Assembly (NCBI RefSeq): GCF_963853765.1
Contig: NC_088857.1
Coordinates: 34,720,001 to 34,784,000 of the forward strand
Source of the DNA: Magallana gigas
Taxonomy: Eukaryota
DNA: 64,000 bases
Direction of reading: 5' to 3'
Part shown: piece by piece, positions 5,046 through 6,451 of the stretch
How positions within the stretch are numbered: position 1 is the stretch's first letter
How the letters are laid out: every line of letters begins with the position of its first letter
Made by a program: the position numbers and the translations under genes
Notes under the pieces: model-generated
The model's input: only the letters and a program-made list of their open reading frames with translations
Database searches by the model: none
What the model was told of the DNA's origin: nothing

Positions 5046-6451
5046 CTACACGTTACATCCAGTACAGATGCTTGATCCACCTCTAAATTTATCGCTGGAA
5101 TATATATAGTCTCGTTCAACCAGACGCTCGGCTGTCTCCGTAAAACTCCGACGAGCAATGTACTTTATGGGGAATCTTCTCATCATTGCATCGATGGCTT
5201 TAAACATGTCTGGTCGAAGACTTGTATACATCAGCATCTGTATTATAACATAATAGTATCGTTTATGTCGTGTTAACTCTTGTTTTTAAATATGGGTTGA
5301 AAACTTTCATAGATAAAGTTCAACAATATTCTTTTATATGAAATGAATAAAAAAATATTACATCTGTATGTAAAACAAAAACTTTAATGATTTCAATAAA
5401 AAGAAAACTGTCCAGCAGTCTCATATGGAAACAAATTTTCACTTTCAGCTTCCAATTGATCAAATATCCTTGGTGGATTTAAAACTGTCCAGCAGTCAAT
5501 CCATTTTCATTAATAAACACTGAAAATAAAATAATAAACCACAAAGCATCTTGTTCTAAAACACACGATAGCAAATGTTAACTATTAAAAACAATTACAA
5601 TTTGAGAAATGATATAGTGATAATTAAGATTTATCATGCACTTAACAATTAACATACCTTCCTTTCATCTCCTATTATATCCTCTAGTGTAAAGGCTCTT
5701 TTCAATGACATTGCCTGAATCCGGTCTGTAAGTTCTTTAACTTGTAGCTTTAGATTCTAAATAAATGAATTAAAGTAAGACGCAGAAAATTTACAATAAT
5801 AATTTAATAATCCATTTAAAAAAACAAACCTTGTGTTCCTCAATCATTCGCTCAAATGTAAGTTGGTAGGAATGGTCATGAGAATGTGGTGGGAGCTGAG
5901 GGGCGCAGTCATTGACATCCAAGGTGCTCACACACATCTCCTGGGGGGCTGCCTCTGCTTTTACGGTTCTCCTTTTAAAACACGGGGATATTCCGAATAT
6001 TTTTTCAATAATTTAATTTCAAAACTATAATACAAAAGTATTTAAAACCAAATTTACCTCGATATTTTATTTGGATCCTCGAAATCAAAAACGGAGCTCC
6101 ATGAGAAAATGGTAGGTCCATTGTCTTTCACTCCGTCCTTGAAATGACAACTACAAATGCGGTCAGATGAAGCATTTATAGATCTGTCCTTCCGCCTAAA
6201 ATGTATGTATGATCGATAAAAAATGAACAGAAAACACACAAATATGTACAAATATAGGCATAATTGGAATTTGCATTTACCCCCCCCCCCCCCCCTTTCG
6301 TATATATGCTGCTTGGAATGCAAATAAAGGGATCTTACCTACAGAGTTTTTCCCATCTTCTCGCCAACGTTGTATTTGTTGGAAACCGGAACATTTTGCA
6401 TGTTCGTTTTAACCCTTGATGGTTACAGTTGAAAACGAAGCATATAGTCAT
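5046..6451 (-). CDS. THAP zinc-finger protein with DHSY (HCF-1-binding-like) motif and coiled coil; transposase-derived, no DDE core; 227 aa
   Basis: Exons 6451-6339, 6195-6058, 5971-5830, 5756-5658, 5237-5046; all GT-AG, phases 2/2/0/0, no internal stop. Protein begins [68 protein letters not shown] (C2CH THAP signature with FP, W, CSxHF and PTIF box), then HDHSY, then heptads ([22 protein letters not shown]), then [25 protein letters not shown] on the minus strand at 4804-4799. Confidence 0.85.

Follow-up and report, generated by a model that had tools for sequence, protein, structure and literature searches.

An annotated THAP–coiled-coil gene of the oyster Magallana gigas is very probably the truncated front end of an ISL2EU-type DNA transposon

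The THAP domain is a zinc module of the form C-x2-4-C-x35-53-C-x2-H, with a conserved tryptophan, a conserved proline, and an AVPTIF-like box. Host THAP proteins such as THAP1 and THAP11/Ronin are encoded by old, syntenic, TIR-less genes under purifying selection. ISL2EU transposons are defined by a THAP-HTH-DDE transposase, a second gene encoding YqaJ, a 2-bp duplication, and TIRs that start with GG (PMC4482050, PMC4122938), and Repbase ISL2EU-N_CGi families have been mentioned for Crassostrea gigas (PMC4122938). In the P element of Drosophila, the 207-aa KP protein and a 66-kDa isoform made by intron retention repress transposition (PMC7776569).

The window analyzed here is a stretch of 64,000 nucleotides of M. 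gigas contig NC_088857.1 (positions 34,720,001 to 34,784,000 of the forward strand). An earlier note, made from the letters of this DNA, had described an intact five-exon gene encoding a THAP domain, an HCF-1-binding motif, and a coiled coil, and had proposed it as a domesticated transcription factor inside a nuclear-receptor cluster. The gene structure is borne out: the minus-strand exons have GT-AG at every border, the four introns are in phase, and the joined exons form an open frame of 227 aa (Table 1). The cluster is also real and is a tandem one, with nuclear-receptor zf-C4 exons flanking the locus. NCBI annotates the gene as LOC105344031 (‘uncharacterized protein’) with two isoforms, XP_011449906.3 and XP_065940759.1, and makes no mention of a transposon origin. 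The 171-aa product XP_011449906.3 (P0133) is 100% identical to window exons 1–4 plus a cassette within intron 4, exon 4b, which is its last coding exon. In C. angulata, LOC128172470 has the same exon set and a 171-aa product, but it is part of a full-length element at a different locus. Comparison with such elements leads us to conclude that the window locus is very probably a dead, 3′-truncated copy of a recently active ISL2EU-type (PHIS) DNA transposon, nested in another repeat. Most likely, it is a neutral relic that the annotation reports as a gene.

Table 1. Features of the locus and its surroundings, in window coordinates.
Feature	Position	Strand	Remarks
Host repeat, left part	3885–5106 (3885–4114 + 4411–5106)		95–96% identity to copies L008–L012
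Exon 5 of the 227-aa model	5046–5237	-	Transposase homology only in 5237–5156 (27 codons, MLMYTSL...KYI); remainder is X repeat and host repeat
Terminal repeat of unrelated transposon family ‘X’	5107–5157	+	Exact 51-bp TIR; outer end towards the host repeat, inner end joined to the THAP element
Truncated ISL2EU-type 5′ part	5156–6531	-	Contains the 5′ TIR, promoter/UTR, exons 1–4, intron 4 including exon 4b, and the initial 82 nt of the transposase exon
Exon 4b, cassette within intron 4	5425–5519	-	Encodes CLLMKMD, then a stop at 5498–5496
Exon 4	5658–5756	-	Coiled-coil helix; alternative acceptor 9 nt inside gives isoform X2
Exon 3	5830–5971	-	Encodes the linker, DHSY, and the beginning of the long helix; intron 3 spliced in X15 and X17, retained in X16
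Exon 2	6058–6195	-	Second half of THAP (CSCH, GPTIF); intron 2 spliced in X16 and X17
Exon 1	6339–6451	-	Begins with the ATG (6451); encodes the N-terminal half of the THAP finger; intron 1 spliced in X15, X16, and X17
Two ACTTCCGG ETS-like motifs	6485–6506	-	5′ end of the element; conserved in the divergent C10 and C4 copies
5′ TIR GGCTAACACAG	6521–6531	-	First 5 nt, GGCTA, shared with the host repeat (5-nt microhomology); no canonical TA in front
Host repeat, right part	6527–6864		Includes two TGACGTCA sites
Nuclear-receptor zf-C4 exons (PF00105, E 1e-13 to 1e-4)	about 20261–21524, 26270–27055, 40424–41011, and just left of the window start	-, +, -	

The kinship with ISL2EU is visible in the long sister copies of the locus. 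Window positions 5156–6531 share 97.0% identity with a long copy located on contig C6 (L002/L033) and 98.5% with copy L053 of C. angulata; these values cover this interval only, introns included, and correspond to the 5′ 1.37 kb of the long sisters. Both C6 and L053 contain the same four THAP and coiled-coil exons, and their last exon continues into HTH_Tnp_4 and DDE_Tnp_4. This last transposase exon is intact in L053, where it encodes 292 aa, and broken by stops in C6. The more distant copies on contigs C10 and C4 have an intact exon of 291 aa (DDE_Tnp_4, 4.9e-39; HTH_Tnp_4, 6e-8), and the E-values of the long copies for HTH_Tnp_4 and DDE_Tnp_4 include 4.9e-39 and 8.3e-38. Complete copies end GGCC(T)RCACAG...CTGTGTAGGCC with TA on either side, and range from about 3.45 kb (C4) to about 5.96 kb (L053). 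Written out with their flanks, C4, C10, and L053 read TA-GGCC(T/TA)...CACAG...CTGTGTAGGCC-TA, which gives a GG-start TIR and a 2-bp duplication. L053 (9920–15876; C. angulata CM046777.1) is apparently intact: all its transposase exons are open, it has a TIR at each end, and TA flanks it on either side. In place of DHSY it reads DQSY.

The second gene of the family is also recognizable. A spliced antisense product of 229 aa on L061, a Logan cDNA contig of a sister copy, matches YqaJ (PF09588; 8.3e-11, 42.8 bits), and fragments of the YqaJ gene are found in all four long copies (L053, C6, C10, and C4) and are absent from the window copy. In a genome-wide YqaJ scan, the element loci were not among the best 150 candidates scored. 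Proteins of 455–483 aa that combine THAP, HTH, and DDE are present in Ostrea, Saccostrea, Crassostrea, Mya, Dreissena, and Haliotis, and the 227-aa model aligns to the N-termini of these mollusc transposases over residues 1–192/193 only (E 1e-52 to P0027).

Judged by their sequences, the long sister copies fit the ISL2EU definition (PHIS superfamily): a transposase with THAP, HTH_Tnp_4, and DDE_Tnp_4, an antisense YqaJ gene, GG-start TIRs, 2-bp duplications, and a length of 3.5–6 kb. The sole difference lies in the duplicated dinucleotide, which is TA here (flank A-TA-T/A), whereas the literature typically reports AT (A-AT-T). The window copy departs much further from the definition. It amounts to the 5′ quarter only, fused to the terminal repeat of another family, and of the transposase domains it keeps THAP alone, without HTH_Tnp_4, DDE_Tnp_4, the antisense YqaJ gene, or the 3′ TIR. 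The earlier observation that no recognizable HTH or DDE follows the YTSL segment is correct for this copy, which would be unable to transpose or to catalyze transposition.

The two ends of the window copy differ in kind. At the 5′ end, a TIR is present at 6531–6521, where the earlier note had reported none. The 3′ TIR of the family was searched for in the window copy and in C6, was not found in either, and was found only in C4, C10, and L053. The 5′ end motif has two genomic copies only, one in the window and one in C6. At the opposite end, the last position homologous to the long copies is 5156; the 82 nt of the last exon kept up to there end in ...RRFPIKYI, and the sequence below is foreign, so residues 194–227 of the 227-aa model (the last 34 aa, and then the stop) are foreign DNA read by chance. 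Exon 5 of this model is a chimera, in which transposase sequence (5237–5156) is followed by a foreign terminal repeat (5157–5107) that supplies about 16 codons and by host repeat (5106–5046) that supplies the last 20 codons and the stop. No AATAAA or ATTAAA is found on the gene strand within 146 nt past the stop of the 227-aa model, which leaves the poly(A) signal of the earlier note unconfirmed; an ATTAAA is located at 5388–5383, in the region of exon 4b. The fallback reading of the earlier note, a young, internally deleted element of the THAP and DDE_Tnp_4 type, comes close. The locus is a young, deleted copy of that family, but the deletion is not an internal one with both ends preserved: the 3′ part is missing, and foreign DNA is attached at the break.

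TA is found on both sides of the insert, although the TA overlap there is ambiguous, and this flank, together with the 5′ TIR, is what an ordinary mobile non-autonomous (MITE-like) element still moved by the family transposase would display. We give this reading next to no chance, because the 3′ TIR of the family is missing from the copy, its far end is the repeat of another family, the chimeric junction (5144–5179) occurs once in the 564-Mb genome, and GGCTA has no TA before it.

The surroundings of the insert date it. A search of the oyster's own 564-Mb genome with window positions 4900–6700 showed that 4900–5106 and 6527–6700 are parts of a high-copy repeat, directly adjacent in its other copies, with many genome matches to the first 207 nt of the query (4900–5106). 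The host repeat extends over about 3885–6864, and window positions 5107–6526 form a 1420-bp insert in it. Five paralogous empty sites read ggaatataTAgcccgag, and the filled site in the window reads ggaatata-TA-(1420 bp)-TA-gcccgag. Since copies of the host repeat are 95–97% alike, the insert is young. This copy of the host repeat also carries a second, unrelated insertion of ~296 bp at 4115–4410, which is missing from five other copies.

The THAP element and the X repeat are joined through a 2-nt microhomology, and microhomology is present at all three joins, which suggests templated end-joining or template switching. The insert was thus probably patched in by one of these routes and not by clean integration through a transposase, although nested insertions followed by a deletion would fit the data as well. 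The order of events cannot be reconstructed exactly, and the junctions do not have the canonical form; both points count against reading the locus as a transposon relic. The motif-rich promoter described earlier is split by the same boundaries. The two TGACGTCA sites at 6543–6550 and 6610–6617 belong to the host repeat, outside the element, and the pair of ACTTCCGG motifs, conserved in divergent copies, is likely an internal promoter of the element. The terminal 80 bp of the family contain this pair and AGTCTCG repeats. Contigs assembled from RNA runs begin at 6493 and 6467, beside this pair, and transcription would accordingly start from the element's own promoter.

The protein features that drew attention to the locus are genuine. 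The annotated 171-aa product matches the Pfam THAP family (PF05485) with 42.2 bits (E 1.4e-10; cut-off 23.9), a score taken on window exons 1–4 plus 4b and not on the 227-aa model, and exon 1 alone gives a THAP half-domain match (E 0.0012). The zinc ligands form the C2CH pattern C4-x4-C9-x42-C52-x2-H55, accompanied by W33 and GPTIF, and the DHSY motif occupies residues 116–119. AlphaFold2, run with a 20-sequence alignment, predicts a β-α-β core and a long helix at residues 118–148 (block pLDDT up to 93), with hydrophobic residues at the heptad a/d positions as expected for the heptad repeat noted before. Prediction of a homodimer for residues 108–171 returned a score of 0.04, which weighs neither way on dimerization. 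The window protein would be able to bind DNA and may pair through its helix.

THAP1 and THAP11/Ronin share this three-part architecture, with [DE]HxY just before the helix, and the match of THAP domain, HCF-1-binding motif, and coil, at a locus annotated as a gene, is what speaks for a THAP1/THAP11-type transcription factor domesticated by the host near the nuclear-receptor cluster. The mollusc transposases, however, conserve the [DE]HxY motif, the LExxVxEL helix, and KMLLYTS, so these THAP1/THAP11-like features are the front end of a transposase. The earlier note had likened the succession of THAP, coil, and a ‘YTGL’-like segment to the N-terminus of Harbinger/ISL2EU transposases, and rightly so: THAP, [DE]HxY, coil, and YTSL are standard in the mollusc proteins. 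An alignment of mollusc THAP-coil sequences (A1; proteins P0027, P0051, P0066, P0062, P0076, P0079, P0088, and P0098), which takes in N-termini of full-length ISL2EU transposases, places the HCF-1-binding-like [DE]HxY directly before the coiled coil; its H and its Y are each conserved in ≥90% of the sequences. The order of [DE]HxY and coil in these transposases matches that of host THAP proteins.

Unlike the host genes, the window locus is a young transposon fragment that inherited its motifs wholesale from a transposase. A single-copy host gene without transposon ends and with a signal of purifying selection is not what is seen here. The surrounding repeat has copies so alike that the insert nested in it is young, its identity to TIR-bearing transposon copies extends to the introns, and its own 5′ TIR is still attached. 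Two loci of C. virginica, LOC111099146 and LOC111101927 (P0128, P0144, and P0145), encode proteins of 170–173 aa that consist of THAP and coil only and are 80% identical to the window product, and no annotated DDE protein of C. virginica is closer than about 60% to the lineage. These loci may represent real domestication, and they lend the idea some credit for the window as well; on the other side, the transposon copies described above are what the C. virginica protein matches best in the genome. On balance, domestication of the window locus is very improbable.

The substitution pattern gives no detectable sign of constraint. Compared with C6, the window copy shows a divergence of 1.9% in exons and 3.05% in introns (p 0.22), seven nonsynonymous and four synonymous changes, and a dN/dS of 0.45. 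Compared with L053, the corresponding values are 1.4% and 1.7% (p 0.82), five and three changes, and 0.42. With 8–11 changes and low power, dN/dS values of 0.42–0.45 are not significantly different from 1 (p about 0.2). The reading frame of exons 1–4 is intact in the window, whereas that of C6 is broken by a stop in exon 3 and also carries the replacement W33S; the intact frame may reflect some constraint or no more than youth. The headline claim of an exapted transcription factor is not sustained by a locus that lies within a young repeat, is 97–98.5% identical to transposons, and shows no detectable constraint. The annotated gene, proposed as a candidate THAP factor, is a transposon fragment and should not be counted among host THAP factors.

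Transcripts were followed in contigs from RNA runs of three studies, placed at ≥98% identity to the window. In these contigs, splicing at the predicted sites has removed introns 1, 2, and 3, and intron 4 is still present; one contig has introns 2 and 3 removed and intron 4 kept. The junction of exon 4 with position 5237 is absent among the RNA contigs and joints listed, and none of the RNA contigs listed crosses 5156/5157. Of the four splice junctions of the 227-aa model, RNA therefore supports those of introns 1–3, and the junction between exons 4 and 5 is absent from the listed contigs. Splicing of introns 1–3 with retention of intron 4, or with use of exon 4b as in the annotation and the sister-copy cDNA, leads to a short product of 166–171 aa. 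This product would contain THAP, [DE]HxY, and coiled coil, that is, the module for DNA binding and dimerization alone.

In one RNA contig, the 5′ TIR is bordered by a flank other than that of the window (TA, then TCTGAGG...), and a second contig continues into a full-length exon 5, which indicates that near-identical long copies exist in other individuals. Because such copies exist, the RNA contigs cannot be assigned to the window locus alone. The intact state of L053, together with RNA contigs that point to similar long copies at other M. gigas loci, indicates that the family was recently active. In the polyA raw-read run X21, of which about 1/100 reads were sampled, depth is zero over 5218–6253, which covers exons 1–4, exon 4b, and the start of exon 5. 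Near-identical sequence is found in DNA runs from several studies; this recurrence, the intact frame, the two annotated isoforms, and the THAP-coil-only loci of C. virginica are the remaining points against the relic reading.

A short THAP-coil isoform is a regular product of the family, which obtains it through exon 4b or by retaining the last intron. In L061, the exon for the coiled coil and the exon for HTH/DDE are separated by a cassette of 95 nt with an in-frame stop, and exon 4b has no GT donor towards the next exon (AT..AG). The use of exon 4b and the retention of intron 4 resemble the regulation of IVS3 in the P element.

The P-element repressors offer the closest functional analogy. 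The KP protein and the 66-kDa product of IVS3 retention are truncated transposases with THAP and a leucine zipper or coiled coil, derived from a deleted element or from retention of the last intron, and the window product, which keeps THAP and the predicted helix 118–148 and lacks the catalytic part, is of the same type. By this analogy, the copy might have been kept because its protein binds the ends of the family or poisons the transposase; any activity of the product would be dominant-negative, exerted on the family ends or on the full-length transposase. The module is the same (THAP at 42 bits, a predicted heptad helix, a comparable size of 166–171 aa), the window frame is open where that of C6 is broken, transcripts keep intron 4 or include 4b while introns 1–3 are spliced, and there would be something to repress, given the near-identical long copies of C. 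angulata and of M. gigas individuals. We nevertheless regard a repressor role as unlikely. There is no signal of selection, the copy is single and young, the long copies can make the same short isoform so that the locus adds nothing unique, and the polyA run is empty over its exons. The two systems also belong to different superfamilies, P and PHIS/ISL2EU, and KP elements keep both TIRs and spread, whereas the window copy is single and immobile; repression by the window product is a hypothesis by analogy.

A broader version of this idea is somewhat less improbable, though still doubtful. This ISL2EU lineage of molluscs might have a built-in short isoform of THAP, HCF-1 motif, and coiled coil that regulates the lineage's own transposition, made through exon 4b or intron retention and convergent with the 66-kDa and KP products of the P element. 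The window copy would then be a hard-wired, immobile producer of this isoform, and in C. virginica the THAP-coil-only loci may have taken this step further, to real domestication. As to the locus itself, we retain the neutral transposon relic as the preferred reading. What it brings to light is a live mollusc transposase family that carries the module of THAP, [DE]HxY, and coiled coil and makes a short THAP-coil isoform, which offers a concrete way to study the origin of THAP regulators or of KP-like repressors.

Family X (L038–L049, L054, and L055), which supplied the far end of the insert, is abundant in the genome. Its TIR measures at least 51 bp (TAGTCTCGTTCAACC...), its copies are flanked by 9-bp duplications and form inverted pairs, and at least 423 genome matches have three mismatches or fewer. 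Mobilization of the insert by family X was considered and rejected, as the 9-bp duplication is absent. The family takes the form of 110-bp palindromic MITEs, 0.6-kb MITEs, and copies of 7–8.5 kb, whose internal open reading frames match DUF6589 and Helicase_C only in Pfam. A tandem array of the family, repeating about every 3.7 kb, is located at C10:17885601-17918966.
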